This document shows, in pieces, positions 633 through 45,490 of a stretch of 64,000 nt of DNA (within the stretch, counting starts at the first letter, position 1; every line of letters begins with the position of its first letter). The notes under the pieces are model-generated. The model was not told where the DNA came from. It worked only from the letters and a program-made list of their open reading frames with translations, and searched no databases. Both the position numbers and the translations under genes were made by a program. Source of the DNA: Piromyces finnis finn (lineage: Eukaryota; Fungi; Neocallimastigomycota); NCBI GenBank assembly GCA_002104945.1, contig MCFH01000007.1, forward strand, positions 496,001 through 560,000, given 5' to 3'.

Positions 633-1297
633 ATAATCATTATAAATTATATAAGAACGACTAAAAACAAAAAAAAAAAAAAATATATATATATATATGA
701 AAAATTATAATAATGATATATAACTATTTTTTGTAATACATTTATATAATTACAATTTTTGTCAAAAATTTATATACCAATTTCTTTTAATATTAATTAT
801 AACCAAAATAATATAATACTACCATAATTATAATAATAAAAGAAATATATACCAAATATTTTATATTTTATATATTTAATAATTATTTCTATATACTATT
901 TTAATCTCACATATATATATTAAATTATCTATATATAACAATTTTTGATTTTAAAAAGCAATTATAATAAATAATAGCAATAAAACTGCTAATTAAATAA
1001 AACATATTTAAATACAAAGTTTTTTATGTATATATTTAAAAGAGAAATTCAAGAATTTATTAATGAGTTTAATAATATTTTTATACCAAAAAAAGTATGG
1101 TTGAACCATTTTTTTTTTGGTAGTATTATGATGTGTAGTTTTATTTAATAAAGATTTTTTGGAAAAATCATCCAATCCAATCAAATATTTTATCTAAAGA
1201 CATTAATTATAATATGATTTAAAAAATGATTTAGTTATTTATATTTTATTTAATTTTTTAAAATAAAAATCAATTTCAAATTTTTAAAAAAAAAAAA

Positions 1298-9145: not shown

Positions 9146-11714
9146 ATGTTAGCTAATGAATTAAAAAAAGCAGAAAGTAACAGTAGAAATAAACAATTAG
9201 AAGCAGAAATTGAAATGCTTGCCAATGGAATTAAAGAAAATAGAAAATCTGTAAAATCTACTTCTTCTTTATCTAAAAACTATAAATCCACCCTTCCAAA
9301 GAGATCAGTTAATACTGGTGCTACTACTTCAAAATCAAAAATTTCTTCCAATTATGGTGTTAAAAAACCAGGATCTGCAAGTAATTCTGTATCAAGTGGA
9401 TACAAAACTACTGCCCATACTTATGGTCATTCAGCTTCTCATATAATTTCAACCACTAGAAATGCTAATAGTAAACCAACTATTAAAACCAATAAGACAT
9501 CTAAAACCCTTTCAACTTCCTCTAAAACTAGCTCTAAATCTAGTCCAAAATCAACTACAAGATTATCAACAATTACCAAAACTAATACAACTTCAACTAC
9601 AAAAAGTAATTATTCCATAGTGATTAAAAAAAAAAAATACGCAGTTGAATATAGTAGAATAGAATGCAGAATATATCCCTCTAAAATTTTATAAATTATT
9701 ATTTAGAAATATTATTATCATAATAATTCAAATGTTTAAAAAATAAATATATAAATATAAAAATTAATTATATATTAATATATATACATCCTATATATTT
9801 TATCAATAATGAATAGAAACAACTACTAGAACTGTTGCTCCATTAAAACACAGAAGACTTAGTAAACCACCAACTTTATCTGATAGTGATATAATTGAAA
9901 AGCAAACTTCTGAAATTGCTTCCTTAGAAAATAAATTAAAAGTATGGTTTAATATCCTGATTTTCTGTTTTGCTTTTTTAAATATAATTCAAAAAAATTT
10001 ATTAATAAACTTTAATTGTAAAATTTAATATTATTATATAGGAATTAACAGAAAAATATTTATTATTAGAAGAATCTGCTTTACTTTACCAAAATGATAA
10101 AATTAGCAATGACTGTGCTACTATTGCAAGTCAAAATAAATACATTTCTGAATTAGAACAAGCTAATCAACCAAAGATTGCTGCTGATTGTGCCACCATT
10201 AATGAATTAATGAAGCAAATCAATCAACCAAAGATTGATGCTGACTGTGCTACTATTAACGAATTAATGAAGCAAATTAATCAACCAAAGATTGCTGCTG
10301 ATTGTGCTACTATTGCTAATCAAAACAAGCATATTGCTGAATTAGAAGAACAAATCAATCAACCAAAGATTGATGCTGATTGTGCCACCATTAATGAATT
10401 AATGAAGCAAATCAATCAACCAAAGATTGCTGCTGATTGTGCTACTATTAACGAATTAATGAAGCAAATCAATCAACCAAAGATTGCTGCTGACTGTGCT
10501 ACTATTAACGAATTAATGAAGCAAATTAATCAACCAAAGATTGCTGCTGATTGTGCTACTATTGCTAATCAAAACAAGTATATTACTGAATTAGAAGAAC
10601 AAGTTAACCAATTAACTTCCAAGCTTTCAATTAAAAGTATTTCAAGAGAAGTTTCACAAGTTAAAATTGAAAATGATTGTGCCACAATTGCTGCTCAAAA
10701 CGAGCAACTTAGATTAAAGGATCAAGAAATTGAACAATTAAAACAACAAATCTTACAATTATCAGCTTCAAAGATTTCAAATAATTGTGCTACAATTTTA
10801 GAACAAAATAAAATCATTGAAGCTCAAGATAAAGAAATTAAGGCCCTCAAATCCCAACTTGAGTCAGTTAATACCAGTTCTAAGATTTCAAATGATTGTG
10901 CTACTATCAATGAATTAATGAAGCAAATTAATCAACCAAAGATTGCTGCTGACTGTGCTACTATTAACGAATTAATGAAGCAAATTAATCAACCAAAGAT
11001 TGCTGCTGATTGTGCTACTATTGCTAATCAAAACAAGCATATTGCTGAATTAGAAGAACAAATCAATCAACCAAAGATTGCTGCTGACTGTGCTACTATT
11101 AATGAATTAATGAAGCAAATTAATCAACCAAAGATTGCTGCTGATTGTGCCACTATTGCTTCCCAAAATCAACTTATCAGTGAATTAAAAGAACAACTTC
11201 TTCAAAAAGATAGAGCTGTTACTTCTAAATCAGATAAAATTGAAAATGATTGTGCCACTATTTCTAACCAAAATGAAACTATTAATAAATTAAAAAAATC
11301 ACTCGAAGAAGTATGTAGATATATGTATATAAAGTTTTATAAAATATTATTATACTAATCATCATTTATTTTTTTTTATCTTAATTTTCTCAGGTTACAT
11401 ACGATAACCAAGCATTACGTAGTAATAATCAAGTTTTACATGATGATATTAAAGATTTAGAAGTCATTCTCAGTCAACTTCGTATTACCTATTTCTCCGA
11501 AAGAAACAGAACTGATTCTTTAGTTGTAAGTTTTATAAAAATTACAAATAAAATATAAAATATATCAATATATTAAAGTATTCTATTCCAACAACACGTT
11601 ATAACATTAATAATTTAACATTACTTTTATATATATATATAGCAAACTATTAGTCAACTTAAGAGAGAAAATTCTCAACTTTCCTCTGACCTTGAAGCTT
11701 TAAAGAATAACTAA
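9146..11714 (+). CDS. Multi-exon protein: basic Ser/Thr/Lys-rich N-terminus plus coiled-coil region with ~16 DCATI repeats
   Basis: ORFs 9146..9694 and 10210..11358 are joined by GT-AG introns (exons about 9146-9605, 9816-9941, 10041-11310, 11394-11524, 11643-11714). Ends EALKNN*. Contains 57-nt and 78-nt coding repeats. Confidence 0.8.
10165..11165 (+). repeat. Coding tandem repeats QINQPKIAADCATINELMK (57 nt) and a 26-aa variant (78 nt), in two arrays
   Basis: Near-identical units caaattaatcaaccaaagattgctgctgattgtgctactattaacgaattaatgaag at about 10165-10610 and 10890-11165. Confidence 0.95.
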
Positions 11715-19416: not shown

Positions 19417-21577
19417 TTTTCTTTTTTTTTTTTATTTATATATAATATATTATTTTAATAAAAAAAAATATATGAATTGGATAAAGACAGAGTTAGAAAT
19501 ATAAAGTCTAAACATAATCTTGAGATTATACGCTAATAAATTATAAATAAATGAATGAAATAATCAAAATAATAATTATTTTTTAACTTTTTTTAAAATA
19601 ATTATCCATCTACGCGGAAATAATAATATAATATGATATTTAATACATATTTATATTATTTCTATTATATACATGTAATAGAGCACTTTCTTTTTTAAAA
19701 AAAGAAAAAAAACGTATAAATGGTAAATTTCTTTAAATTTTTATATTGAGTTTACTTACATATTATATATATTATTTATTTTATATTTTTCTGTTTTCTT
19801 GTTATTTTCTTGTTAGTTTTGGTTTTTTATTCCTTGTTGCTGTAAATATTTATAATATTATGCTTACTTTTTCTTGCTTTGTTTACTTTAAAAAAGAGAA
19901 AGTAAAAACAATGGCACTTTTTTTTATATATATATAAATATTTTATGAAATAATAAGAATAATAATAAAAAAAAGATAATTCTTCTTTATACACGTAATT
20001 TAATTATAATTTTTAATCAAACCTTCCTTTTAAAGTAATTCATTTATATTTATATAATAAAGATTCAAGCCACAAATTACATTAAAGAGTTTTTTTAATT
20101 TTTGAATTTATATAATTTATATATATCATATATTAAGTTAAACTTTAAATTATATTAAATCAAATATTATCCTATAACCTCAAAGTTCCTTTTTTATAAT
20201 TAATAAAGTTAGATATTCATCACAAGTTTAAAATTATATAAACATATATATTTATTACATTTTACATATGTTAGAATTATAAAAAGTCTATAATTTTATT
20301 TCTTTTTAAAATTCCTTATTTAATCTTTTTTAAATGAAATATTATTTGATTTTATTCCTTCTTTTTCGGTTCCTATTCCAATTAATTTAAATGCTATATT
20401 GAAAAAAAAAATTGAATTTAAAAAGTAAATGCTTATAAATAATAACTTTTAAATAATTTACTTAAAAATGGTAATAAAATGTCTGTATACACAAAAGATT
20501 ACTTAAATTAATAGAATATACTATTTATCCTTTGTGTGTAATTGATGTTTAGAAATCACAATTCTAATATATGATGATAAATTAATTTTTTATTAATATA
20601 AAATAAATAAATAGATCATTAAATTAAATAATGGAATAAATATTTTATTTATTGATGATCCCTAATTGTTTTAAAATCATAATAAACTCTTGGTTTTCCT
20701 AGAATATTCATGTACATTATTAATAAAAATTCATAATAGCCACATATATTGTATGTATAATGAGCTATTTATAAATAATTATAAATAAACTTTATTAATA
20801 ATTTTTAATCAACAAATAACAGTATTAATTATAGATTAAAATATTTAATTACTTTAAAACTTTATTAAATAAATAAATAAATAACCTGAATTAACAACAA
20901 TAAAAAAAAACAAAAGGAAACTTGGCTTATTTTTCTTTTTTTTTTTTTTTTTACAACTTATTTTGTTAATAGAAAATACATTATGAATATTTTTAAATGA
21001 TGATTCTATAAATTTTATCTATTTCTAATAACTGTTCTATGAAGGGATAGAATTTAATAATTTCTTTATGAAATCATCCTTTTTTTTATTAATTTTTTGT
21101 TTTTTTTTGTATATATTAATTGGCATGTTTCAGATGATGAAAAAATTAAATTTATAGATATTGATGAAGGATGGAGAAGCATTTAAAACCAAAAAGTAAA
21201 AATTAGGTACCAGATCAGATCAATTAAGTCACACCACCAAAGTAAGGATTACCTAGTCTAACTTTTTGTTTATTATTTTTATTATAAATATTATGAGAGT
21301 TTTAATATTTTTTTCTTTTCTAAATATTAAAATGTATCTTTTTACTTTTTTTTTCTTTTGAAAAAATTATAATAAAGTTTACTTTGAATATTCTTTTTGC
21401 CACTAAATATCCTCTAGTTTGTTTATACAAATATAGTTTAATTGCTTATTATGATTTTACATTTACATTATATATACATTACAACATTCTATTATATTGT
21501 AGAAATAATTTTTAAACATTATAAATACTTAACTAAAAAAATTAGTAAACTATTTTGTAAAGTTAATGGAACATGCC

Positions 21578-21734
21578 TAATTTATACATAATTTATATCC
21601 TAGTATAAAAAGTAGACGAATAGTAATTTATACATAATTTACATCCTAGTATAAAAAGTAGACGAATAGTAATTTATACATAATTTATACCCTAGTTATA
21701 TTTGTATAGAGTAGACGAATAGTAATTTATACAT
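21578..21734. repeat. 46-bp tandem repeat, about 3.3 copies
   Basis: Unit taatttatacataatttatatcctagtataaaaagtagacgaatag. The third copy has an insertion. Confidence 0.9.
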
Positions 21735-22329
21735 TTTTATTTGATTATATATTTATAAATATTATTTAGTTTAAATATTCATATCTATTAATATTTACTA
21801 TAATAAAAAATTTTTTTATGGGTTAAAATAAACACATTATTTAAAGATAAAAAAAAAGACATCTTTTGATGATGGTGCTGAATTATTATAATTATTATAG
21901 TCATAAATATTTATTTTTAAATTATTGGTATTTTCCAATAAAATTCTTTTATAAAATGACTTTTAAAATTAAATAAAATATTTTTTATTTCTTTATTTCT
22001 CTTTAATTACTTGGGTTATGATTGAATTAATAATAATAGAGAATTGGTTAATAAATATAATTTTAAATATTATAATTAAATATTGAAAGTTTAAGACAAC
22101 TAAAGATATACTTTTAGATGGTCTAAAACAGTTCAATAAATTGTATAAATTAAATGTATTTTCCTCACATATAATTTATAATATTTTCTAATGCCAGGAT
22201 TGTAAAAAATAAAAAAAAAAATATTTATTATTATTTTTTTTTTTACTCCACCAGGTTTTCAATTTTATTAATTTAATTGTAGGGTTTTTTTTTTTTTCCA
22301 TACCAATAATATATTATAGATGTAAAAAT

Positions 22330-23802
22330 TTAATATCCATGTAATACATGTTGTTTATCCTTTGGTAAATTATAGTATTTTAAAGCTTCTTCTCTCATTT
22401 CTGAATTTGTTTTAGAATACCAACTCTCATTATTAAACACTGAATTTCTTACATATTTGGAAAAATCGTCTTTTCCAAGTACACCAGCTAAATGTACTAA
22501 AAAGTCACCTTTTTTAATATGATTAGTAACATTGTAACCTTCACAACAATAAGAATTAAACTAATTTTGTGGAACAATTATATAATGACTATCTTCTTCC
22601 ATATTTTGTAAAACATGGAACATAGAAGATTGGTCATAATAATAAAGATCTTCTTCTGAATGATAAAAGGCATAGGTATAAGCTTTCATCATAAAATCAA
22701 TAGACCATGGATGAACACGAATTAAAAAAACTCCTGCATTTAATCCGTTAACATCACTTGTTATTACTAAATGAATATCATCTTTATCGTCTGGTGGAAT
22801 GAATGCTTTTAATTGAATATTTGGATTGGTGAGAACAACATCTCCATCAACCCAAAATAACCAATCATAACTTTGATTCTTCATTGCATCCATTAAATGT
22901 TCTAAAATATAATATAATTTCATATAATAGATAGATCTTGTCTTTATTATATTTTGATCCTCTAACGAAAAACCATAATTATAAGCATCCGCATATTGTG
23001 CAAATTCACTAATGGCATTCTCATAGACAGAATCTTTTTTGACTTTATCTGCAAACATAATAATTTCAAATTTTGGTTCTTGAATTTCTTTTGGCTTACA
23101 ATGGTATGTTACGTCCATGTAAAGACTGCGTTCTGAACATGGTGTTCCATAAATTATTGTACTTGGTTTAATGTAGCAAGAACGGTTATCGTCACATAAC
23201 TTTTTAACTTTATCTAGTGGTTTTAATTCACACTTTTCTTCTTCGGATACGGTAATCCAATTTTCTGGATAATCATTTCCATTTTCATCTTTTATACATT
23301 TTTTATTATCATTTACTCTTCGACCAAAGAATACATCCTCAATTTCAATTGAAAAACCAACAGGACATATTATTTTATTTCCTTCATAAGATTCTAATAC
23401 TTTACTGGTATCATAAGTACAGAATATTCCGGTTACTGATGGTAAAGTATTATTGGTATTATGAATTTTTATTTTTTCATCCTTTTGAATATTAGGTTTA
23501 TGTTTAATCATTGAATGTATATTATATTTTACATCGTCTGTTGTTGTATTTGTATTATAGTATTTTAAATATTTTTGTTGCTTATTAATTTTATTATCAT
23601 TAGTTGATATAGTTGGTATAGTGATATTTTCATACTTTAGCTTTATAATATCATCCATTTTTTCACTATAAATGGTATTAAATACTTTATCATTTAGAGT
23701 ATTCATTGAAAATTTATATAATATTTCAAAAGTACCACCCAATACAAGGATAGCAGTAAATGTTAATAGTATATATTGATACTTTTTATATATTAATTCC
23801 AT
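22330..23802 (-). pseudogene. Gal/Rha-binding (SUEL) lectin-GT34 fusion, paralog 1, with a premature stop codon
   Basis: Matches 30816..32276, but TGG(W) has become TAG at 22561-22563. The same frame continues (FNSYCCEG...DFLVHLAGV...ALKYYNLPKDKQHVLHGY*) to TAA at 22330, 491 codons in total. Confidence 0.85.
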
Positions 23803-24494
23803 TTTATTATATATATATGTTTTATAATTTAAAAATAAAAATACTTTGATATAAAAGTTATAAAATATATATTTTTATATTTTTAGTTTCAAAACTCTTT
23901 GAAATAAAAATTGATAAATGTTTAAACTATTTATGTTTTTTAGTATTTGGTATATTAGCTAATTATAATAGCTATTTATTTTTTTTGTTATTAATTTTTG
24001 AATTTTTAATATTAAAAGAGTTTTTTATTATATATATTTTCTTTTTATTATATACTATTTTGAAATATTGTTGCTATTATTATGTTTGCTTTTTTCGAAA
24101 AAATGAAATAGCAACTTTATATATATTTTTGTATATTATTTTTTTTATGTTTTTTTTTCAATGTTTAAAGAGAAAAAAAAAAAAAAAAAAAAAACATTTT
24201 AATATATTTTTTAATATATATAACTTCTCCAGTTATGAAAAAATTTTATATTAAAAAGACGATCTTTATTTAATATTATTATATGAGAATGAGAATAAAA
24301 AAGTATGGCATTATTGAAACAAATATTAATATCTAACAAAAAAAACAATATTTAAATTATACCTTACTATAGATTTAGCTTATAATAAAATAGAGAATAA
24401 ATTTTAAAATTGTATATTTAACCTTTAGTCTTTAGTTCTTTCTCTTCTTTTTTATTTTAAATATGATACACTTTTGAGTGATATTTTTTGAAAC

Positions 24495-24710
24495 TATTAG
24501 GAGTGGTAATTTAGGATTTATGATTATGTCAACTTTATTAATATATTTTATGATAAAGAACTACTTGCGTTACATTCTTCTCAAACTACATGTATTTATA
24601 CATTTGCATTGTGGCTTAAACATATAATTAAATACAATATATACAAATACGTTTTAATACATTTCAATACATTTGAATACATGTGACATAACGTTTCACA
24701 TATTCTAACA
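24495..24710 (-). repeat. 3' LTR (216 bp, TG...TA on the minus strand)
   Basis: Minus strand reads TGTTAGAATATG...CACTCCTAATA. 214/216 identical to 29747-29962. Confidence 0.93.
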
Positions 24711-24720
24711 TTCCCCCTCA
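24711..24720 (-). promoter_or_regulatory. Polypurine tract (TGAGGGGGAA) abutting the 3' LTR
   Basis: Plus strand ttccccctca lies immediately next to the LTR terminus ...ctaaca, a typical copia GAGGGGGAA-TG junction. Confidence 0.88.
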
Positions 24721-25020
24721 AACCTAATTTTCTACTAAGTAAAATTTGGTTTGCTGGTGAATATGTGCATTTTATTATTTCTAAACTATTAACTATAAAC
24801 TAAATCTAATGTTTAAAATTTTTATATTTCATTAACTGGAATTTAAAATATTTCACATATATTATTCACTAATTGCTTTAAAGAATTTAAATATTACCCT
24901 ATAACTTCGTTTTTATGGATAAACTGAAAACCTTTGTATAATTGGGTAGTATTAAAGTTTAAAATTTGGATTGGATATTCATAAATTGTTATACCATCCA
25001 TTAAGGATTGAAAACCCTTC

Positions 25021-25280
25021 CGGTTTTACATTATCCTATAAACTATATTGGTAATCTCTCTGAGATTTACACAGAATTATAGACAACACATGGTTTACCT
25101 CTTTGGTTTTACGTTTTCTTAACAACTCATGGTTAACCTTTGATTTTACGTCCTTATGACAACACATATGGATAACTCTTTTTGGTTTTACGTTCTCTTA
25201 ACAACCTATGGTTAATCTTCTTGGTTTTACGTTCTTCGGACAACCTATGGATAACTCTCTGGTTTTATGTCCTTATAACT
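25021..25280. repeat. Degenerate ~39-bp tandem array (about 6-7 units) in the 3' internal region of the element
   Basis: Recurrent ggttttacgt(t/c)...acaac(c/t)(t/c)atgg(a/t)taa(c/t)ct units. Confidence 0.8.
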
Positions 25281-25677
25281 ACAATTTTCTTTAGAATATT
25301 AGCATAATTGTATTTCAATCTATTTGTAAATACTAATTAATAATGGTAAAATTTTAATTAAATTCTTAATAGTTATTTAGTTTATGTATATTGAATTTTA
25401 ACATTTTCTTTTAGGTGTTTTTCCTTCCTTTTATGCCTTTTGTATTGATTAATTATTCTTATAATATTTAAGAATATTTTACTTTGTATTTGAAATTTTG
25501 TTCTTTTCATTTTTACATATTGAATATTGAATCTTATAAATTTTTACATTTGAATTTCAATTCATTCTATTTATTAAGCCTTAGTTTCTATGCAATGTTT
25601 TAGTTATTTCCAATGTTTAACTAGAAACAAAAATTATTATCTTGAATTTTAAATTTCGTATATTCACTACTTCCCCC

Positions 25678-25681
<4 letters not shown>

Positions 25682-25747
<66 letters not shown>

Positions 25748-26279
25748 TTCCGAGTGCATTTCTCCCATCGATCAGAGTTAGCTCCAATGGTGGTTCTTAG
25801 AGAAACGTTGGCTCATTCCTATTGCTAGGTGGTTGTGACCCTCCTGGTCTGTCATACTGTTTCTTCAGCTTCGACGCTCACTTAATCCATGTACATTAGA
25901 TGCATGTCGTTGTACGATATTTCACAACTACAATGCTAAGCCTCTTATAGTCAATTTGATCACGTGTCAACCGCCCCCTAATGTTTACACTTAAATTGAT
26001 TAAGGAATATTATGTGTTTTTGGCATAGCCTAAGTCACCACTTATTAAGTTCTAATTTGGAATGTACCATGTACACTAGACCCTCTCAGGCCGGCTAGAC
26101 GAGTGTTATTATCATAGTAGTAAATTAGAAAGTTCATTTATACTTACCTGAATATCATAACCCAACCCATGGCAAACCCAGTGGGAAAATCCACAGGCAC
26201 TGACATCTGCGGGGTCGAACCAGAAGCCTTATGTATGCTAAGGAAACGCCTTAACAACCAGGATAAAAACTGGAACGAC
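25682..26279 (-). mobile_element. tRNA-Ala-derived SINE with 63-nt poly(A) tail and 13-bp TSD
   Basis: Head GCG-TTTCC-TTAGCAT-ACATA-AGGCT-TCTGG-TTCGACC-CCGCA has canonical tRNA spacing, anticodon AGC and a B box at 26211-26221. Poly(T) at 25682-25744 on plus. TSD acttccccctcaa at 25669-25681 and 26280-26292. No ORF. Confidence 0.88.
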
Positions 26280-26947
26280 ACTTCCCCCTCAAATCTAGAT
26301 GTTTAGTAATAAATATTTAGATTTGAAAATGAGAAATTTAAATTTCATAAAATTTCATTCATTTTGCATCAAATTTTCATAATAATGAATAAATTTTCAT
26401 AACATATACGATAAATTTTAATGCCTATATTAAAATAAATAACATATTCTAATGTTTTCATTCATTTTTCTCAATTACTAATCCTTTTAAGTGTTGTGAA
26501 ATTAATGAAATGATTATTAAAATCAATCAAACAATTAAAATATACTTCAAGTATTTATTTCTTTACTTCAAATTAAAATAAGTAAATATACCAGTAAGAT
26601 TATAACAAGTTAATATGATAAGATAATGACATTTAAAGTATCGATTGTTGAAGAGAATAAAGTTCTTCTAAACAATATCGAAGTCGGCTCGGTTAATTAG
26701 AATGTCAGCTAATAGGTCGGCGATCACTCACTACGTTTAAAGTGGCGATATGTATATGAGGGTTTCTAAAATCACCGTAAATTTAATTTTAAAACGGCGT
26801 CACAACATTCTTGAATGTTGGTAATAAATATATATGATGAATCAATGTCATCTAAATTTATGGAGCCCTTTCTATAAAGGTGCTACATTTTATTGATGGG
26901 ACCAAATTAAATATATGTAGATCTTGAACCATCATTAATAAATATCT

Positions 26948-27080
26948 ATGAATTTAACTCATTTCACGCTAAGTTAAATCATGATAAGTTGTTAAAATAT
27001 TATTGAATGCACCCATTTCACGCTAGGTCATTCTAAATATATATGTGTAGAATATGCTCATTTCACGCTAAGCATTTCTA
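26948..27080 (-). other. Three tandem stem-loops with different stems and an identical 12-nt loop
   Basis: Plus-strand stems atttaact/agttaaat, gaatg-acc/ggt-cattc and tagaa-atgct/agcat-ttcta each close the loop CATTTCACGCTA (26960, 27014, 27059). Confidence 0.85.
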
Positions 27081-27770
27081 ACTTTAATAAATTACCTCAT
27101 TTAAAATATATGCTTTGTAGATTAGCAATAACTAATAATTGCCTACGGGATGAGCATTTGACCAGAAATATATTTGCTTTGTAGATTAGCAATAACTTTA
27201 ATAATGCTTTTGAGGCTAAATATATTATCTTAATGTGTTGTTATAGTAAATCAATTCAAAGAGTTGTATACTGGATTAAATAATATATACTAATTTTGAG
27301 TGATATTATCATGATGAAGTTGTTTGACATTTTCACAAGGATAGTTCAATTCTTTTTGTATAATTTCATTGTAATAGGATATTTTATATAAACTTATCAA
27401 ATAATGTTTAATTATTCTAATTATTGTTTCTAATTGTAAAAATTAATTATTTTCTTCAATTCTTTCCCCTATGGCGGAAAGGATATTATCTCATTAAAAT
27501 AGTAGTAGTTAAAATATTCGAATATTTCACAAACAATTTATTTACTTGAAATAAATATGTATGCTTTTAATAACGATAATGCTATTTTATGAATGTTAAT
27601 AAAACTAATTCTTTTAAAAATAAAATGAATGTTTGTAGGTGTATGTATGTTTATGAATATTTACATAATTGAATATATGGATTTTTAAATGATAATGAAT
27701 GTAAATTGACATAATGAGTAGATCAAAATCAAATTAATAAATTTAATAAATTGAGTAAATTAGGAGAATT

Positions 27771-28973
27771 CTAATATACAATGTTTATTTGCCAAAACAT
27801 TACTGACATTAAAATAATAAATACATTTGCGAGAGAAATATATTTGAAGTTTACAGTTCCGTTTGAATCTTCTTGTTCGTCATTAAGTTGGTTATCAACA
27901 ATATAATAACCACAAGATTCACTATCAACTATATTAATGTCATTAGAAATATTAGTTATATCGGTATTGTTAGAGATAATTGGTATTTTGGATATACTGA
28001 CTTTACTAATGTCAACTTTATAACCAAGATCGCATAACTTTTTAATATAAAATTCACCAATATGATCACAAATTTCTATACCAATTTTAGTATATGTTTT
28101 ACCAAAATTGATATAGGTTGAATAGTCACAACCTGCAAATAGTGCAGCCTCAGCTGCTCTTCTTCTTACTAATCCTGGAAGAGGTTTTAAAACACCGTTT
28201 ACATATCCTTTGTTGTATTCTAAAATCTTTTTATTAATTTCTTCCTTTGTTCTCCGACCATTATTAGTTAATCCATCAATACTTCCAACATTATAAGCAA
28301 AACTACATAATGCATCATATTCATTTTGATTCCAATTATATTTATAATTGAAAGATTTTACATTAGGACCATATTTTTTTTCGATTGAAAGTTTTAACCA
28401 TTTCTCTGCAGTTTTTTCATCTATTGTTAAGCCCTCGTTGATATATGTTCCAGTAATATCATAGTTAGCACTGGTAGTACCGTAACCAATAGTCCATACT
28501 CCAACCGGATCTAAATAGGCAGTTAATACACATCCTTCAAAAATTTTGATTATGTTAATTATATTGTCACTTACTTTTAATTGATCATTATTTTGATTTG
28601 TATTTGGAACGCATAGTCGAATAACACTAGGTCCTGGGCATTGGTCCATATATCTCGTGTAAGATTCTTCTGAACAGTCATCTTCATTTATATTTTTACA
28701 TTTTCCTGTATTTAGAAGAGCTGTTCCATCTGTAAGTGTATCGACATCTTTTATACAGCATTTAATATTAACTGAGTCATGTGTACAAAAACCTGCATAT
28801 GCTTTAGCATTGCCAGTTTGTTTATCATTTAATTTACATTGATCCTCTCTAACGCAAACACCTGTTCCGACATCGGTTACATGACATTTTTGATTTTCAG
28901 CAATTACCAATGGTAGAATTAAAATTGTCGAAAAAATATTTAAAAAATATATTACTTTGCTTCTTAATCTCAT
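27771..28973 (-). CDS. Secreted, membrane-anchored GH24 (phage-type) lysozyme with two N-terminal Cys-rich modules
   Basis: Signal peptide; two GxC...C...GxC/QCPGP...CC modules; FEGCVLTAYLDPVGVWTIGYG with E/D/T catalytic residues; QNEYDALCSFAYNVG; LPGLVRRRAAEAALF; C-terminal hydrophobic segment. Intronless. Confidence 0.93.
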   Translation of the reverse strand: MRLRSKVIYFLNIFSTILILPLVIAENQKCHVTDVGTGVCVREDQCKLNDKQTGNAKAYAGFCTHDSVNIKCCIKDVDTLTDGTALLNTGKCKNINEDDCSEESYTRYMDQCPGPSVIRLCVPNTNQNNDQLKVSDNIINIIKIFEGCVLTAYLDPVGVWTIGYGTTSANYDITGTYINEGLTIDEKTAEKWLKLSIEKKYGPNVKSFNYKYNWNQNEYDALCSFAYNVGSIDGLTNNGRRTKEEINKKILEYNKGYVNGVLKPLPGLVRRRAAEAALFAGCDYSTYINFGKTYTKIGIEICDHIGEFYIKKLCDLGYKVDISKVSISKIPIISNNTDITNISNDINIVDSESCGYYIVDNQLNDEQEDSNGTVNFKYISLANVFIILMSVMFWQINIVY

Positions 28974-29732
28974 TCTTTGGAGTATTTATAATATTAATAT
29001 ATTTGATGAAATTTAATAACTCAATTGTAAATAATTATATAAAATAAATTTAGAGTTCACTAGTTAATTTATACTGTTTGTAGTGAATAAGGTAAACTGA
29101 GAATGAAATTCTATTGTTTATTTAATTCTAAATTTATATTTCGAATTTGTACTTTATTAACTTTGAATTTAATTTTACAATATCTATTCATAAATAGTTT
29201 CTAAAATAATTAATTCTTTTCAATTTTGAATACTTTAATTTATTTCTGAGTTTTAGGCATTGGTTGTATTTGAATAAAATAAATTTTATGTTGGTTCAAA
29301 ATTATTTAGAGTTCAATTTGTTTTGTTTATTTTTAAATTTAAAGATTTAAATTAAAAGTTAAAAAATTCAAAATTCAATTTTAGAATAATTTGCTTTCGG
29401 AATTTAAAATTGTCTATATTATTTTAGTATAAGGAAACTTTGTTTATATCAGGTAATGTTTTTCTTTCATTTTACTGGATTATTTGGTATTTCGTGGTTT
29501 TTCAATTTTAGATTGCCATTTCAATTTCAAAATTTTTGAAATCTCAAATTCTAGATCTCAAAACAGTTTTACCAAACATAGATAATTTCAGATTAAATAA
29601 TTTAATTGTAATGGTTAGAATTTCCTACTGTTTTCTCCTTTGACATAATACTGTATCCGGCAGTTTGATTCATCTTTCAGAGAATCATTTGAGAGTCAAT
29701 GAGGGTCATTGAGATTCTCTCTTGAGAGTCAT

Positions 29733-29746
29733 TGAGACTCTTAATC
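29733..29746 (-). promoter_or_regulatory. Primer-binding site complementary to the tRNA-Lys(CUU) anticodon arm (half-tRNA type)
   Basis: Minus strand GATTAAGAGTCTCA directly follows the 5' LTR. Its complement TGAGACTCTTAATC matches the anticodon stem-loop of eukaryotic tRNA-Lys(CUU), ending at position 40. Confidence 0.8.
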
Positions 29747-29962
29747 TATTAAGAGTGGTAATTTAGGATTTATGATTATGTCAACTTTATTAATATATTT
29801 TATGATAAAGAACTACTTGCGTTACATTCTTCTCAAACTACATGTATTTATACATTTACATTGTGGCTTAAACATATAATTAAATACAATATATACAAAT
29901 ACGTTTTAATACATTTCAATACATTTGAATACATGTGACATAACGTTTCACATATTCTAACA
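29747..29962 (-). repeat. 5' LTR (216 bp)
   Basis: Direct repeat of 24495-24710, flanked by the TSD GAAAC at 29963-29967. Confidence 0.93.
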
Positions 29963-30815
29963 GAAACGAAAAAAAAATTTTTTTTTGTTCTTTTTTTTCT
30001 ATGGTAACACAGAAATAAAAACATGAAGTGAAGCTAAGAAAAAAATTTTTTTTAATATAAGCCAATTAATTAATAATAAATTAAATGTATTAAATTAATA
30101 TAAAATTAATATATTTATATAATCCTTAATATTCTATAAACTCTATTAAATTAAAGTTGTACAAAAAAAAAATAACATCATACATAAAATTCAATTTTAT
30201 TCTTATCCACATGCAATGATAAAACATAATATATCACACGATATTTAAAAGTTATGGTAATATTTATTCAAGATTTTATAACATTATAATATAATTTCTC
30301 TTAATAAAAGTTGAAGAGCTTACCCATTTTATTTTTTAATAGTAATAACAACTATTGTGAATATTTATTAATATATAAAATATATTTGTATCAAATATAT
30401 CATTGAAATATATTGATTATATATGTCCTTTTATTAAATATTATTATTATATATATGATTAAAACAATATATAAAATAATATGTAACATTTTTATTTCTT
30501 TGGGATAATATATATTTTATTTTACCATAGGTTTTATAATTACAAAGAGGATTTATATTCATCTCTTTATAATTATTAAGTTATGTTTAAAATATTTATG
30601 ATTTTTTTTTTCATTATAATTAATTATAATAAATGAATAAAAAATAATAATATTAGTATAAAGTTTTTTTTTAAAAAAAAAGAATATACAAAAAATACAT
30701 TGCTAATATTTCTTTTTTTTATTTATTTATTTATTTATTTATATATTTATTAAATAATCAATGAAAATATATATTTTCATAAAAAATATATATTATAATA
30801 AAGTTTTTTTTTATG

Positions 30816-32276
30816 CTAAAGTTTAATCTGTTCATCCTTTGGTAAATTATAGTATTTTAAAGCTTCTTTTCTCATTTCTGAATTCGTTTTAGAAAACCAA
30901 CTCTCATCATTATAAATAGTTTCTCTAATACTTTTAGCAAAGTCATCTTTACTAATTATACCAGCTAAATGAACTAAGAAATCTCCTTCTATTATATTTC
31001 CTACAAATTTAACGTCACAACAGTAAGAGTTAAACCAATTTTGTGGAACAATTATATAATGACTATCTTCTTCCATATTTTGTAAAACATGGAACATAGA
31101 AGATTGGTCATAATAAAAAAGACTTGCTTCTGAATGATAAAAGGCATAGGTATAAGCTTTCATCATAAAATCAATAGACCATGGATGAACACGAATTAAA
31201 AAAATGCCTGCATTTAACCCATTTTCATCATTTGCTATCACTAAATGAATATCATCTTTATCGTCTGGTGGAATGAATGCTTTTAATTGAATATTTGGAT
31301 TGGTGAGAACAACATCTCCATCAACCCAAAATAACCAATCATAACTTTGATTCTTCATTGCATCCATTAAATGTTCTAAAATATAATATAATTTCATATA
31401 ATAGATAGATCTTGTCTTTATTATATTTTGATCCTCTAACGAAAAACCATAGTTATAAGCATCCGCATATTGTGCAAATTCACTAATGGCATTCTCATAG
31501 ACAGAATCTTTTTTGACTTTATCTGCAAACATAATAATTTCAAATTTTGGTTCTTGAATTTCTTTTGGCTTACAATGGTATGTTACGTCCATGTAAAGAC
31601 TGCGTTCTGAACATGGTGTTCCATAAATTATTGTACTTGGTTTAATGTAGCAAGAACGGTTATCGTCACATAACTTTTTAACTTTATCTAGTGGTTTTAA
31701 TTCACACTTTTCTTCTTCGGATACGGTAATCCAATTTTCTGGATAATCATTTCCATTTTCATCTTTTATACATTTTTTATTATCATTTACTCTTCGACCA
31801 AAGAATACATCCTCAATTTCAATTGAAAAACCAACAGGACATATTATTTTATTTCCTTCATAAGATTCTAATACTTTACTGGTATCATAAGTACAGAATA
31901 TTCCGGTTACTGATGGTAAAGTATTATTGGTATTATGAATTTTTATTTTTTCATCCTTTTGAATATTAGGTTTATGTTTAATCATTGAATGTATATTATA
32001 TTTTACATCGTCTGTTGTTGTATTTGTATTATAGTATTTTAAATATTTTTGTTGCTTATTAATTTTATTATCATTAGTTGATATAGTTGGTATAGTGATA
32101 TTTTCATACTTTAGCTTTATAATATCATCCATTTTTTCACTATAAATGGTATTAAATACTTTATCATTTAGAGTATTCATTGAAAATTTATATAATATTT
32201 CAAAAGTACCACCCAATACAAGGATAGCAGTAAATGTTAATAGTATATATTGATACTTTTTATATATTAATTCCAT
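30816..32276 (-). CDS. Type II membrane SUEL-lectin-GT34 (GMA12/MNN10-like galactosyl/mannosyltransferase) fusion, intact paralog 2
   Basis: N-terminal TM; lectin pattern CPVGFSIEIEDVFFGR...C...KVKKLCD.NRSC...YGTPC...YMDVTYHC; GT34 motifs DWLFWVDGDVVLTN, NGLNAGIFLIR, YDQSSM and DFLVHLAG. Intronless. Confidence 0.9.
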   Translation of the reverse strand: MELIYKKYQYILLTFTAILVLGGTFEILYKFSMNTLNDKVFNTIYSEKMDDIIKLKYENITIPTISTNDNKINKQQKYLKYYNTNTTTDDVKYNIHSMIKHKPNIQKDEKIKIHNTNNTLPSVTGIFCTYDTSKVLESYEGNKIICPVGFSIEIEDVFFGRRVNDNKKCIKDENGNDYPENWITVSEEEKCELKPLDKVKKLCDDNRSCYIKPSTIIYGTPCSERSLYMDVTYHCKPKEIQEPKFEIIMFADKVKKDSVYENAISEFAQYADAYNYGFSLEDQNIIKTRSIYYMKLYYILEHLMDAMKNQSYDWLFWVDGDVVLTNPNIQLKAFIPPDDKDDIHLVIANDENGLNAGIFLIRVHPWSIDFMMKAYTYAFYHSEASLFYYDQSSMFHVLQNMEEDSHYIIVPQNWFNSYCCDVKFVGNIIEGDFLVHLAGIISKDDFAKSIRETIYNDESWFSKTNSEMRKEALKYYNLPKDEQIKL

Positions 32277-33675
32277 TTTATTATATATATATGTTTTATA
32301 ATTTAAAAATAAAAATACTTTGTGATATAAAAGTTATATAAAGTTTTATTTTATGTATTTTTGGGTATATTCTTTATTATAACTATTAAATAAAATATGG
32401 TTTATTATTTAATCTTTTATATTTATTTAATATTGTTTATAATTATTGCTGTTTTTTTTTTTTTTTACTTCTATAGCTATAATACTTTTAAATTTTCATT
32501 TTATAATTATATATGCACTATTTTTGCATAGTTTAAGTATTTAAAGAAAATTTACTACTACTAAATAATTGATTGTTTCTTTTTTTTTTTTTTTTTTACT
32601 TTTTAAAAAAGAAATTGGTAAAAAAAAAAAAAAAAGGACCTATTTATATACAATTTCTAAAACAATTATGAATATGTTATTGTATTGTTACTTTCATTAT
32701 ATTATATATTATATAATATAAATAGTTAAATATTATTTCTATTATAATATTAATTCAAGCATTTCTTTTTTTTTTTTTAATAGAAAAATAGAAAAATAGA
32801 AAAAACATTTTTCACACAAAATTAAATTAAAATTAATAATTTAAATTTAATATATGTTAATTATATATTGAATACATATTTAAATAAACTTTAATTAATA
32901 TCAAAATATGACAATTTCTATTATTCAATCCTTATTTACAATAAAAGAATACATTAAAAATTAAAAAAAAAAAAAAAAACAATATTGTGATATTGTTACA
33001 TTTACTTGAAAAGAAAATATGAATTATAAATGCACTTTTATTGAAAAATCATCATCCATTTCTATATTCTATTCTTCATTTTATTCTATTTATTTTATTT
33101 TTAAAATCATTATAATTTAAAAAAAAAAGATGAAACATTAAAAATATACTCATATAAATCCTTTACTTTTTTAACATTGCAGTATTCATAGAATTAAAAA
33201 AAAGAATAAATTAATTATTATCTTTTAATATATTAAAATGAAAAAATTAATTGTAATTTTTATAGAAAAAAACTTTTTCTTTATATATTATATAAAATTT
33301 TTGTTTTAATACTATTCTTTTTTGTTTACTATTGTTTAAGGAAATAACTAATAATACTATTTTCAAAGTATTTTCATTTTAATTATTCAATACATTTTTT
33401 TATTTCTTTCTTCAAGTGTTTATAAATCCACAATTAAAATTTATATTATAATATTTATAATATATTTTTATTGTTTTTTTTTATTTTTTAATATGTAACA
33501 TACTTGAAAGAATAATTAAATGTTCAATTTTAATATTGTTTGTGAAATAATTTAAAACTTTAATATATAATAAATTTAAAAAATGTTAAATTAAAAAAAT
33601 GTAATAAAATTATATTGAAACAATCATTGTTTTATTATTTTTAAATAAAAGGTGGGTGTTTTATAAAATGAAGAT

Positions 33676-33811
33676 ATATAATAATAATAATAATAATAAA
33701 CATATTAATAAACATAATAATAATAATAATAATAATAATAATAGTAATAATAATAATAATAATTTCAATAATAATAATAATAATAAACATAATAATAATA
33801 ATAATAATAAT
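33676..33811. repeat. Imperfect (AAT)n microsatellite
   Basis: AAT repeats interrupted by aaacat units. Confidence 0.9.
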
Positions 33812-34689
33812 ATTTATAGCAAAATTAAAACATCATTAGAATATTATTATACATAATCATGAATCATTATGTAAGATATGATATAAAATATAAATTATAA
33901 ACCTTAATTATTATAAATTGGTAAATTTATAATAATTAAGTTTTTAAAGTTACTATTTTCTATTTAATTAATCTTTTTATATACTTTTATAGAAATATAT
34001 GACAATTTTAGTCATAATATTATCATAAAAATAAAATATTATATTAAATAAAGTTTTTGACATTATCATTTTATGATATTATTATCTGATATAACTCGGT
34101 TCAATACAATTTTATTTTTAAGGGTTTTGTGATTAAATACTTTATTTATTATTAATATTACAATAAAAGACGTATTTTCAATAATTCATATTTTTCATAA
34201 TCTATACTAAATATTTAAGAATAGTTAATATAGAACTAGTAATAATATAATAGAATTAATAATAATATATAAAATAAATATGGAAACATTAATAAAATAA
34301 GAAATAATATTTATTTATGTATATATTCATGTGATAATCATAATTTAAATATACACCACCACTATAACTTTTTATGTAAACTTAAGATTTTGTAGAAAAC
34401 AAACTTATGGATTTTATGTATTTATATTAATTAAAAATGTAAAACAATTCTAAAAATATAAATATACACAATAATCTATTTCATATGAAATAGAAAATAT
34501 TGTATTAAATTTAATTTATAGAATAGAATGTATATTTCATTTTTAATATAATATATTGAATGAATATAATAGTTTAATATTATATTCATATTTAATAGAT
34601 AATATATAAAATGAAATATCCTTTTTACAGAAATTAGTATTAAATGTATTGAAAATATATAATATTAAAATTATTTAATATTTTCGTTT

Positions 34690-34790
34690 TTTATAATTAT
34701 AGAATTACTATCGCTAACATTTGATTCAAACCACATTTATTTATACATTTACATTGTGGCTTATACATCTAATACAATAATATTTCATAT
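34690..34790. mobile_element. Diverged solo-LTR fragment related to the 216-bp LTR
   Basis: 26-nt exact match tatttatacatttacattgtggctta at 34738-34763, with alignable flanks (agaattactatcgctaacatt vs agaactacttgcgttacatt). Boundaries are approximate. Confidence 0.65.
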
Positions 34791-35397
34791 ATATTTCATA
34801 TATCTGTCATTTGTTCAAATATTTTTAGTATATAATAAATATTTATTTATTATATCCTTAACATAGATTGTACATAAAATGTATTAGTTAAACCTCTATA
34901 CTATTATCATATTATATATAATATTAATAATAATAATCAATATAGTATTTTCTAAAACTAACTTCATACAACAAAAGATTAAAAAATATTTTATTATATT
35001 CATTATTCTTTAGCTTTAAAATTATTTATGCCAATAAGAAATTATTTTTAATTGGTATATTTATTGCATTTATATAAAAACAAAACTTTTATTTGATATT
35101 TTTTTATATACACTATTGAAAATTAAAAGGCCTTAAAAATAAAAAAAAAAAAGTATCAATAAATGAAATATAAATTTTTAAATGTATTAATATTTTACTA
35201 ATTTATTAAATATTGTTTTTTATAATGAAAGAAAATATATAAAAGGGTAATAATTATCATATTTTTTTTTTAATTATATAATAAATATAAGAAATATTAT
35301 GTAAAAAAAAAATATTTAAAGAAATTTTTTTTTTTGATAATTATTACTAATAAATAAAAAAAAGAAAAAAAAATCAACATTTATTAGTATCCACTAT

Positions 35398-38300
35398 TTA
35401 AAATAATTTAATAATCTCTTCTGCAATAAGTTCATCTTCTAAATTCCATGATATTTTAACTAAATTTCTAGAGGGCGAAATTCTGACTTCTACTGAACGA
35501 ATGGTTAATATACTTTCATCATGATCTTCTCCATGACTGTTGGAGGAAGAGGAATTATTTTCATCTTCAGATATAGTATTATAAATATCTTCTATATCAT
35601 TATAAATAGTTCTATTATCCTCGTCTGCTGCTTTTTCTTTCCCTTTGTTTTTATTTGTTGTGATTTGCGGATTACCTGTATTTTCATTATTTTCTTTGGA
35701 TTTTTGTTTTTCTTGATTTTCATTGGTATGCATAGTATGTACATTTTGTTTCTTTGAACGTGTTAACATTTCTATTTCATGCAATGAAATACACGGCTCA
35801 ATATCATTTACAACTGATTTGGTATCATGATTATTTTTTGTTGACTCTTTTTCTTTATCCTTGATATCTTTTTCTTTTTCCTTAGGATTACGTTTACTAT
35901 AGGAAATGGAGGAAGAGGATGTTCCCACTTCAATATTTTCATTTGTCGAATAAACTAAACCTGTTGAACTTGTTAATAAATTAAGAGAACTTTCTCCTTC
36001 TATCCTTAAATTTATCTGTCTTTGGGGTGGAATGGATGAGGAATGCTCGGAATTCATTGGTATATTAAAGGAATCACGAAAAACAAACGATTTATTTTCA
36101 TGAAGTTTACGATAAATTCTTTTTTTCGTAATTAAATTATCTAAAATATAATACTTTAATTCAATTAAAATTCGATCTTCTAAATTGATTTGATCATACT
36201 TTTTTTCAGCTATTTCTTGTTCCTGTTCTAGTGTTTTAATTTCTTCTTCTTCATTAACTTCACCTTCTTCAATGGCCTCTTTTTTATTTTCTTCTTCCAT
36301 ATTATCTTTTTTATCCTTTTCATCGTTATCTTCCTCTTCACTTTCCTTATCTTTTTCTTCGCTTTCCGTGGAATCATAGTATTTTAATTCCTCTTCTAAA
36401 TGTTCTCTTCGAATGTCCGCTAAAAGGTTTAGGGTGGAGGAATCACACGATGCATTCTTACTATTTTCCTTATTAATTGATTTTAATTTATTTAAAAGTC
36501 TTTTCAAATCATAATTCTTCTTTCTAATACAAAATTTAACTTTTTTGTCAATGAAACCACGATCATTCGCAATGGTTTCTTCATTAACAATCTTAATATG
36601 ATTACGATCAAAATCTTGAAAAGATTGTCCTTGAACTTCATAGGTAATATCACTTTTATTTTCATTTAAATACCATGAACCTTCATTCCATCGACTTCTT
36701 TGGGTTAATGATGTTTCTCTATCGGGATTTGAGTCATTATTTAAATCCCAAAGCATCACCCCTCTAAACGGTAAATGTCGGATAGGTTTCATATATTTTA
36801 TCGGGACATTCGCAATAGGCTTAGAAAGAATATCCGTAATACTTTCGTTGCCTGTTCCATTTTTATTCTTTTCTCCCTGCGTAAAATGATTATTGAATTT
36901 TCGAACTTTTAATTTTAGATTTTCTTCTGATAATTTATCGCTCAACTCTCTTTTTCTCTTCTTTTCATTATCTATACTGCTATCGATGTCTTGTTTCGTT
37001 GGTTCCATTTTTATATTATTATTCTCGGTATTTTGAATCGACCATGAATTAGCATCAATATTTTCTTCTTTTATATAAAAATGAGACGGTGGCAGGTTTG
37101 ATTGCATTTCCTGTTTAATATTCATTGAACTTTCATTTTCCTTTTTAATTAAGATATTCTCGGATGAAGCAGAATTATTTGATTCATATTTTATGTTACT
37201 TATCGGGGTATCTATTTGCATGGCTTCTTGTTTAATAGAACTACTATTTGTATTGTCTTCTTCTTTTTTTACCCTGCTTCTTTGATCGTTTCTTGCGATA
37301 TTAGAATTTTCGTCGATAAGGGGTTCGTCAGAAGAAACACATGGTAAATCACCAATTTTGTCAATATCAATAGCATCTAAACTTTTCGCTGTAGACGTAT
37401 ATGCTAAGTAATCGTCCAGTGATTTTTTGATGACATCAACCGAAAGATCAACTTTGATATTTCTCTTTGTATTTATCGTTACTGTTTTACCGTTAGGAGG
37501 ATAATACACCGGAATTTTAATTTCATCCTCAATTTGACGAGCTAAATATTTCATTTTTTCTTTTTCACCATGAACAAATATAACATTTTTTGGTTCACAC
37601 ATACCAATCATTTGCATAATACCTTTAGCATCAGCATGAGCTGAAAAGGAAAGATTTTCAACTTTTAAATTGACATTAATTTTATTGAAGCGATCAATTT
37701 CAATAATTTTATCACCTGCTAAAACTTTATTACCAACTGTACCAGCAACACAATATCCAGGAAGAATAACCATATTTTTTGGATCTGGTGCCCATTTCTT
37801 AAATACATTTAATGATGTACCAGCATGTAACATACCTGGGGAAGCAAAAAGAACCATGGGTCCTGGATTGTCCGCATAATGAGAATCCCAAGGTTTAATG
37901 TGATTAAAATCAAACATATTTCTTTCAACAAAATTTTTTTTAATTTTTTCATTGGTCCAGTTAATAAAAACTTTATAAATATTATTTGCTTTTGAGGTCA
38001 TACCCGTTGAAAAGTAAATTGGTATTTTTAATCCCATTCTTTCCCAAAAACTTTCAATTAAAATACATAATTCTTGGGCACGACCTAAGGCAAATACTGG
38101 AATTAACACCTTACCTCCTTCTAATACACAGTTATGGACTTTTTTAAGAAAGGTTTGTTCTCTTGTACGTTTAGATTCACGAATAACAGTAGCATATGTG
38201 GTTTCAGTGATTAAAACATCTGGTTTGCATTTATCAATCCAAGCAGCACCTAAATGTCTATCAGGGGTCATATTATAATCACCAGTATATACAATGGAAT

Positions 38301-43658: not shown

Positions 43659-45490
<1,832 letters not shown>

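Follow-up and report, generated by a model that had tools for sequence, protein, structure and literature searches.

Acutely transforming retroviruses, which are replication defective, transduce viral oncogenes (v-onc) with the aid of a helper virus, and Starships are cargo-carrying DNA transposons of fungi. That long terminal repeat (LTR) elements can transduce genes is established. Maize Bs1, present in 1 to 5 copies, and retrocopies in Drosophila, mosquito, and zebrafish exemplify the transduction of cellular sequence, including its secondary retroposition (Tan et al. 2016, PMC5131818). Capture of the gene ToxB by Helitron-like elements has been described in fungi (bioRxiv 10.1101/2025.11.13.688278), and fungal Copia elements and their nonautonomous dependants have a primer-binding site (PBS) complementary to a tRNA anticodon loop and a 5-bp target site duplication (TSD) (PMC10886601). 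GH24 lysozymes have been noted to be unusually numerous in Piromyces, without a cause being given (PMC8778642). Here we describe an LTR element with a GH24 lysozyme gene at positions 24495 to 29962 of a 64,000-nucleotide stretch of the genome of the anaerobic gut fungus Piromyces finnis (assembly GCA_002104945.1, contig MCFH01000007.1, positions 496,001 to 560,000; referred to as the window). The element is very probably a young copy of a nonautonomous P. finnis LTR family that is mobilized in trans and whose sole gene encodes a modular secreted protein, in this copy a phage-endolysin-type GH24 muramidase. No description of an LTR vehicle for a GH24 lysozyme was found in the literature searched, and to our knowledge no mobile-element context has been reported for fungal GH24 muramidases.

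An earlier note on this DNA had described a complete element with 216-bp LTRs, a GAAAC TSD, a polypurine tract (PPT), and a PBS. Each of these was seen at the ends of the element (Table 1), the PBS in a nonclassical form. The two LTRs are identical at 214 of 216 positions and in the sense orientation have the termini TGTTAG...CTTAATA. GAAAC lies directly outside both LTRs and thus flanks the whole unit, as had been claimed; the chance of a 5-bp match is about 0.005 at this base composition, an estimate that takes into account the extreme AT richness of the window (about 18% G+C [GC]). Because the PPT abuts the downstream LTR and the PBS abuts the upstream LTR when the minus strand is read, the element is oriented on the minus strand, like its open reading frame (ORF). 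The LTR has in its sense orientation a TATA-like box, TATAAATA, at nucleotide (nt) 111 and AATAAA at nt 172, a layout that resembles the usual arrangement of a U3 promoter and R polyadenylation signal.

In one metagenome relative and in each of the seven P. finnis copies, a second purine tract, identical to the 3' PPT, lies about 1 kb upstream of it, and about 45 nt upstream of this internal tract are conserved across organisms. By analogy with Ty1 and lentiviruses, the internal tract may function as a central PPT. The PBS stretch GATTAAGAGTCTCA(A)TGACTCT is conserved beside diverged U5 ends. It lacks the classical form, in which a PBS of the type TGG... pairs with the 3' end of a tRNA. Instead, its complement, TGAGA-CTCTTAA-TC, is shaped like a tRNA anticodon arm with U33, the anticodon CUU, and A37, and presumably matches tRNA-Lys(CUU).

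The only ORF of at least 60 amino acids (aa) between the LTRs is intact and encodes a 400-aa protein. The earlier note had taken it for a co-oriented, secreted GH24 lysozyme, and the minus-strand location, the signal peptide, and a match to the Pfam family Phage_lysozyme (PF00959; E = 1.4e-25, aa 143 to 275, 90.5 bits with a cutoff of 22.3) bear this out. The catalytic motif is Glu-x8-Asp-x5-Thr, the arrangement of T4/P22-type lysozymes, and in an alignment with 44 homologues E146 and T161 were invariant and D155 was nearly so. In an AlphaFold2 (AF2) model, the predicted local distance difference test (pLDDT) score was >90 for most of aa 131 to 320, and a Foldseek search of the PDB with the model matched phage endolysins best (E = 4e-10; target TM-scores of up to 0.82). 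Both the GH24 catalytic triad and the lysozyme fold are intact. The C-terminal hydrophobic helix might serve as a membrane tether or a tether of the glycosylphosphatidylinositol (GPI) type. Like the Trichophaea saccata GH24 protein with an SH3-like domain (PDB 8b2s), this is a secreted fungal protein that has a GH24 fold and an added noncatalytic module. However, the two proteins are only 23% identical, and the accessory modules here are a Cys-rich N-terminal domain and a hydrophobic tail.

Three contigs of the P. finnis assembly encode the identical 400-aa protein: MCFH01000007.1 (the window), MCFH01000053.1, and MCFH01000006.1. Two further copies encode proteins that are 96% (MCFH01000137.1) and 82% (MCFH01000013.1) identical to it. 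Thus, there are full LTR-lysozyme-LTR copies on five P. finnis contigs, and the ORF is intact in all five. BLASTN searches with the element showed that similarity stops exactly at the LTR termini, with a unit length of 4,883 to 4,896 bp in the fetched loci. The TSDs of the lysozyme copies, in the sense orientation, are GTTTC (window), TAAAC, TGGAT, ATTCT, and CCCTC, each a perfect 5-bp duplication; perfect, mutually different 5-bp TSDs were found in all seven copies of the family that were examined. The LTR pairs within a copy differ by 0 to 2 nt, and the neighboring genes differ at every location. The window copy is the same as the copy at locus L004 over the first 3,683 nt, and its last 1,187 nt have four substitutions and are short of one 39-nt repeat unit. 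Because each copy has its own TSD and the LTR pairs differ by so little, it is concluded that the lysozyme gene has moved repeatedly and recently inside the element. This extends to five copies the proposal, made earlier from the window copy, that the lysozyme moved as part of the element.

It is extremely improbable that a host lysozyme gene merely came to lie between two independent solo LTRs or was inserted into a noncoding element that had already landed. Secondary insertions into the element do occur, as a non-LTR retroposon has entered the window copy. However, the TSD flanks the whole unit, four other loci have the same unit with other TSDs, and sister elements with a different cargo have the coding N terminus and/or tail, the leader, and the 3' region in common with it. 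Furthermore, a lysozyme gene free of LTRs, which the earlier note would have counted against its interpretation, was not found among the annotated P. finnis proteins of 220 to 700 aa with either the whole protein or its C-terminal 60 aa as the query, a search outside which parental genes that are unannotated or of other sizes would fall.

The multiple copies might instead stem from segmental duplication at the DNA level, or from gene conversion, of a locus with LTR-like repeats. A neighboring GT34/SUEL-lectin gene in the window has been duplicated in tandem at the DNA level, and the mosaic divergence of the copies (99% identity in the LTRs and the last 1 kb, 91.5% in the ORF) suggests recombination or conversion. 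Yet homology ends exactly at the TG...TA termini of the LTRs in seven of seven loci, each of which has a new TSD; the copies are on different contigs with unrelated neighbors; and the flanking tandem duplication stops short of the insertion site. Duplication or conversion of this kind is therefore considered very unlikely to be the source of the copies.

Two sister elements, at loci L006 and L010, have the same LTRs, leader, and 3' region as the lysozyme element and a different central coding domain. At L006 (TSD ATTTT), the gene for P. finnis protein P0004 is within an element with the same LTRs (96 to 99%), leader, and 3' region. The first ca. 130 and the last ca. 35 residues of P0004 are common to the lysozyme protein, and the center is different. 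In the element at L010 (TSD ATTAC), the LTRs and the 3' region are retained, together with the leader to a point 34 nt short of the ATG and the 100 nt that code for the tail. Its cargo protein (514 aa) has a different signal peptide and shares its central domain with P0004. Searching the annotated P. finnis proteins of 220 to 700 aa with the tail alone matched only these LTR-borne proteins. Both cargo variants have the same right-hand breakpoint, inside the tail-coding sequence, which would fit template switching or recombination guided by homology. The earlier note had predicted, among other things, that the same LTRs would enclose other cargos. It had also considered that sister elements might reveal a separate, later insertion of the lysozyme; instead, the sister elements differ by in-frame domain replacement.

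The domain that stands in for GH24 in these two copies is an uncharacterized domain of about 160 aa, HYRGKSG...WCLTLGSY...HFSGYDxWDFEW (P0004 aa 150 to 350; L010:9773-11314). It has about 50 representatives among 1.84 billion clustered proteins, belongs to no Pfam family, and co-occurs with chitin-binding modules. A second domain of the L010 protein was considered as NlpC/P60-like, an assignment that found no support from Pfam, NCBIfam, or BLASTP against protein P0003. The AF2 model of the L010 cargo (mean pLDDT, 41) was too poor for a fold search.

Stop-free segments of at least 35 aa outside the lysozyme ORF had no Pfam family match at E <= 1, and no relics of pol or gag were found in the interior. 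Neither gag nor pol was seen in the window, in seven loci, or in 10 metagenome relatives, and the remaining large ORFs in the window belong to ordinary fungal genes (for chitin synthase, a beta-CASP nuclease, and glycosyltransferases). The element is considered nonautonomous because gag and pol are lacking from its interior and the gene tables of the loci list no reverse transcriptase, integrase, or gag. Thus, of the earlier statement that the lysozyme had replaced gag/pol, the absence of gag/pol was observed, and the replacement itself is a proposal. The helper is likely to be of the Ty1/copia type, given the 5-bp TSD and a PBS whose complement is shaped like a tRNA anticodon arm, an argument by analogy with described fungal elements.

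The known nonautonomous elements known as large retrotransposon derivatives (LARDs) and miniature terminal-repeat retrotransposons (TRIMs), such as the fungal Helenus TRIMs (PMC10886601), likewise have LTRs, a PPT, a 5-bp TSD, and an anticodon-loop-like PBS and lack gag/pol. Their interiors are noncoding, whereas every member examined here has an intact cellular-type ORF, with different ORFs in different members. The v-onc retroviruses likewise lack gag/pol, have a captured cellular gene between LTRs, and rely on helper proteins, as the P. finnis element would. In contrast to those viruses, the P. finnis element is endogenous and intracellular and shows no sign of env or of a viral particle, and its cargo, far from being oncogenic, plausibly benefits the host.

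Comparison of the copies at L004 and L002 provided insight into whether the ORF is maintained. Their identity is 99.1% in the LTRs, 96.4% in the leader, 91.5% in the ORF, 91.3% in the next 1.5 kb, and 99.6% in the last 1 kb, a mosaic that suggests recombination or unequal constraint. The 102 nt differences in the ORF (8.5% divergence) include no stop and no frameshift, and the ORF has a single in-frame indel, compared with 55 to 56 gap columns in each flanking noncoding segment. When the 102 observed substitutions were placed randomly, with a spectrum taken from neighboring DNA, a stop codon arose in 2,000 of 2,000 trials. Because this neutral simulation always gave a stop and the only indel in the ORF is in frame, it is concluded that the reading frame has been kept by selection. 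The 1 kb from the internal PPT to the 3' LTR, with its 39-nt repeats, is 99.6% identical (3684-4680), versus about 91% for the ORF and the adjacent 1.5 kb (sense 990-3683). This near-identity may reflect strong constraint in cis or homogenization by recombination, perhaps with a helper element.

It is possible that the lysozyme ORF is a functionless passenger that has not yet decayed, or that it is kept for the sake of the element, for example through translation-dependent RNA stability. Most copies are very young, with LTR pairs 0 to 2 nt apart, and the substitution pattern described below could be expected of a passenger. However, the L002 lineage has diverged without losing its frame, the catalytic Glu, Asp, and Thr and the cysteines are conserved, and proteins with the same tail and a GH24 domain are found in other organisms together with homologous downstream noncoding sequence. 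Because such related proteins and homologous downstream DNA are found in other organisms, the ORF appears to have been kept over a long time. A passenger ORF is therefore regarded as improbable, although less so than the other alternatives to a mobile, selectively maintained cargo gene.

Several observations weigh against the interpretation that the window element is a trans-mobilized copy with a functional secreted cargo. The ratio of nonsynonymous to synonymous substitution rates (dN/dS) among copies ranged from 1.5 to 2.7 across four methods (Fisher p = 0.003), and dN roughly matches, and does not exceed, the divergence of the neighboring noncoding segment. This is suggestive of an amino acid sequence, above all in the Cys-rich domain, that is weakly constrained or under diversifying selection. 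The Cys-rich domain has the highest ratio, with a dN of 0.19, and retains its cysteines. Divergence at synonymous sites in this AT-saturated genome is below that of adjoining noncoding DNA, and because dN is no higher than the neighboring noncoding divergence, AT-biased mutation at synonymous sites may inflate dN/dS. Thus, the values above 1 are not taken as proof of positive selection. In addition, the LTRs of the P. finnis elements end in TA rather than the canonical CA, which is the terminus (...AACA) in the relatives L079 and L086. No tRNA gene was detected with ARAGORN in the window and 24 loci, and there was thus no tRNA-Lys to compare with the PBS. Finally, there is no autonomous partner in the window or in the fetched P. 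finnis loci, whose gene tables are without reverse transcriptase, integrase, and gag.

The GH24 domain is 55 to 64% identical to bacterial and phage endolysins, as might be expected if the lysozyme sequence were bacterial or phage contamination or the product of a chimeric assembly. This possibility can be virtually dismissed. The GC content of the ORF is about 28 to 30% in a fungal contig of 18% GC; the eukaryote-type signal peptide, Cys-rich domain, and C-terminal tail are all absent from the bacterial homologues; and the gene is on five long fungal contigs amid fungal genes. In a tree of GH24 domains, the window protein grouped with proteins P0001, P0002, P0003, and P0005 (support, 98/95), and proteins with bacterial wall-binding modules fell on the other side. 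The closest nonfungal GH24 protein is P0006 (63% identical), a prophage endolysin encoded between a holin and a serine recombinase. Therefore, the lysozyme, earlier termed bacterium derived, is better described as phage-endolysin-type.

Relatives of the element were found beyond P. finnis. P0003 (658 aa; Logan SRR13090323), encoded by an AT-rich organism, has GH24, chitin-binding, and NlpC/P60 domains and the same kind of tail, and noncoding DNA downstream of its gene is 66 to 75% identical to interior sequence of the P. finnis element, the internal PPT region included. An exact-match scan of Joint Genome Institute (JGI) metagenomes with the 17-nt PPT/LTR junction gave 91 matches, most of them due to chance, and about 10 AT-rich contigs (21 to 26% GC) are true relatives that have the PPT region and the LTR start in common with the P. 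finnis element. Those in which the 5' end is present have the same PBS despite different U5 ends. Their ORFs encode a SUEL-lectin protein with a similar tail, coiled-coil proteins, an H-type lectin, and a Cys-rich membrane protein. Contigs L012, L051, L054, L079, and L086 have the same PPT, LTR start, and PBS with other ORFs, one of which encodes an unknown 406-aa protein. In L051 and L079, the PBS comes directly after an LTR, which suggests tandem elements or assemblies that collapsed across multicopy LTRs.

A broader interpretation is that these elements form a long-lived LTR vehicle family of anaerobic gut fungi that is without replication genes and always has an intact gene whose product is secreted or at the cell surface (GH24 lysozyme, the domain associated with chitin-binding modules, lectins, and others). 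Such a family would be kept by selection as a platform that amplifies and relocates these genes and shuffles their domains; among the products would be an antibacterial enzyme of phage origin, itself subject to diversifying selection in the bacteria-rich gut. We offer this broader interpretation tentatively and consider it rather doubtful in its full form.

The following mechanism is proposed for the P. finnis family. The 5' LTR, with its TATA-like box and AATAAA, would drive an LTR-to-LTR RNA that would be packaged and reverse-transcribed by the proteins of an autonomous element, probably of the Ty1/copia type. Plus strands would begin at the PPT and at the second, identical internal PPT. Integration would put gene copies at new sites and raise the lysozyme gene dosage, and template switching between copackaged RNAs would shuffle the modules of the ORF. 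The protein would be exported and probably tethered to the fungal surface via its hydrophobic or GPI-like tail, where it would cut bacterial peptidoglycan.

Table 1. Features of the LTR element in the window and parts of its cargo protein (positions in the window unless given as aa)
Feature	Position	Strand	Remarks
5-bp TSD, left copy	24490..24494	.	GAAAC on the plus strand, GTTTC in element sense
3' LTR, 216 bp	24495..24710	-	Two differences from the 5' LTR, at 24500 and 24606
PPT TTTGAGGGGGAA	24711..24722	-	Abuts the 3' LTR; same in 7/7 P. finnis copies and 10 metagenome relatives
Tandem repeats of ~39 nt	25083..25255	-	Within the conserved 1 kb that separates the internal PPT from the 3' PPT; kept in metagenome relatives
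Internal second PPT, central PPT-like, TTGAGGGGGAAGT	25669..25681	-	3' side of the 13-bp TSD of the later retroposon
Secondary non-LTR retroposon, 598 bp	25682..26279	-	Window copy only; outside the family consensus
Internal PPT copy	26280..26292	-	5' side of the retroposon TSD
Noncoding 3' region, downstream of the ORF	26293..27770	-	Part of it is conserved (66-75%) downstream of a related lysozyme gene at L007, in another organism
Cargo ORF, 400 aa, lysozyme	27771..28973	-	Pfam, alignment, AF2 model
Leader, PBS to ATG	28974..29724	-	Kept in sister elements, in L010 up to 34 nt before the ATG
PBS GATTAAGAGTCTCAATGACTCT	29725..29746	-	Abuts the 5' LTR; kept in relatives with different U5 ends
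5' LTR, 216 bp	29747..29962	-	100% identical to both LTRs of copy L004
5-bp TSD, right copy	29963..29967	.	GAAAC on the plus strand
Cargo protein, signal peptide-like hydrophobic helix	aa 1-27		
Cargo protein, Cys-rich, beta-rich domain	aa ~28-130		
Cargo protein, GH24 muramidase	aa ~131-285		E146, D155, T161; followed by an extension
Cargo protein, linker			Low confidence, low complexity
Cargo protein, C-terminal hydrophobic helix	aa 381-399		Small residues (DSNG) before it

The retroposon that entered the window copy has a 63-nt poly(A), and the internal PPT is duplicated over 13 bp on either side of it, which, judged from the sequence, is the signature of long interspersed nuclear element (LINE)-type retroposition. 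A 5'-truncated copy of the retroposon, 100% identical, was found near the element at L004:15572-15776 with its own TSD, AATAATTCGAGTG. Because this identical truncated copy elsewhere has a TSD of its own, LINE-type retroposition appears to be currently active in P. finnis as well. The 5' end of the retroposon has a B-box-like GGTTCGACCCC, and no tRNA was called in it by ARAGORN or Rfam. Over window positions 20000 to 36000 as a whole, Rfam gave no match at E <= 1.

The LTR element occupies the spacer between duplicated GT34 genes. The tandem duplication (22352 to 23990 versus 30829 to 32467; 93.7% identity over 1,649 bp) involves a SUEL-lectin and GT34 (GMA12/MNN10) galactosyltransferase-like gene, with a shorter ORF in the first copy (413 versus 486 aa). 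A paralogous empty site was sought in this duplication and was rejected since the duplication ends short of the insertion site. Fragments that are 70 to 80% similar to the middle of the LTR were found at window positions 34689 to 34779, L001:13969-14086, and L004:14003-14150, two of them adjoining element copies; the fragments are probably what is left of older or related LTRs. Arrays with a 9-nt period lie at window positions 44069 to 44545 and from 48603 onward, 4.3 kb apart, and repeats with a 57-nt period lie at 10117 to 11292, inside the ORF at 10210 to 11358. Both kinds of array are probably repetitive coding sequence.

Among described systems, LTR-mediated retroposition as in Bs1 likewise places cellular coding sequence between LTR sequences in nonautonomous, TSD-flanked units that undergo secondary retroposition, here represented by five lysozyme copies and two cargo variants. 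In those cases, the cargo is a partial exon mosaic, whereas the cargo here is a complete, intact ORF for which no LTR-free parent was found within the range of annotated proteins searched. Further differences are that the lineage here has subfamilies diverged by 8.5%, all recently active, as well as relatives in other organisms; that the cargo body has been exchanged in frame between fixed 5' and 3' ends, coding and noncoding; and that the cargo is a phage-type lysozyme in an anaerobic gut fungus. Helitron-like capture of ToxB and the Starships resemble the P. finnis family in that a mobile element amplifies a secreted, effector-type gene and shifts its copy number. However, those elements move by rolling-circle or tyrosine-recombinase DNA transposition, unlike the RNA intermediate with LTR, PBS, and PPT here. 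Thus, what is new in P. finnis is the complete, selectively maintained ORF as the sole content of the element, the phage-endolysin-type cargo, the in-frame exchange within a fixed skeleton, the several diverged subfamilies that have all been recently active, and the host group.

Amplification of lysozyme genes by an LTR element would give a mechanism for the abundance of GH24 in Piromyces, in which a gene domain of phage or bacterial origin, once in a eukaryote, was amplified and diversified further by the retrotransposition machinery of its host. The element is a natural, currently active, compact LTR cassette of 4.9 kb with defined cis elements (LTR, PBS, and two PPTs) in fungi that are without genetic tools. 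It provides a system for asking whether selection on host-beneficial cargo sustains a lineage of nonautonomous retroelements. If the vehicle-family interpretation is true, these elements would be a retrotransposon-borne counterpart to cargo-carrying DNA elements such as Starships.

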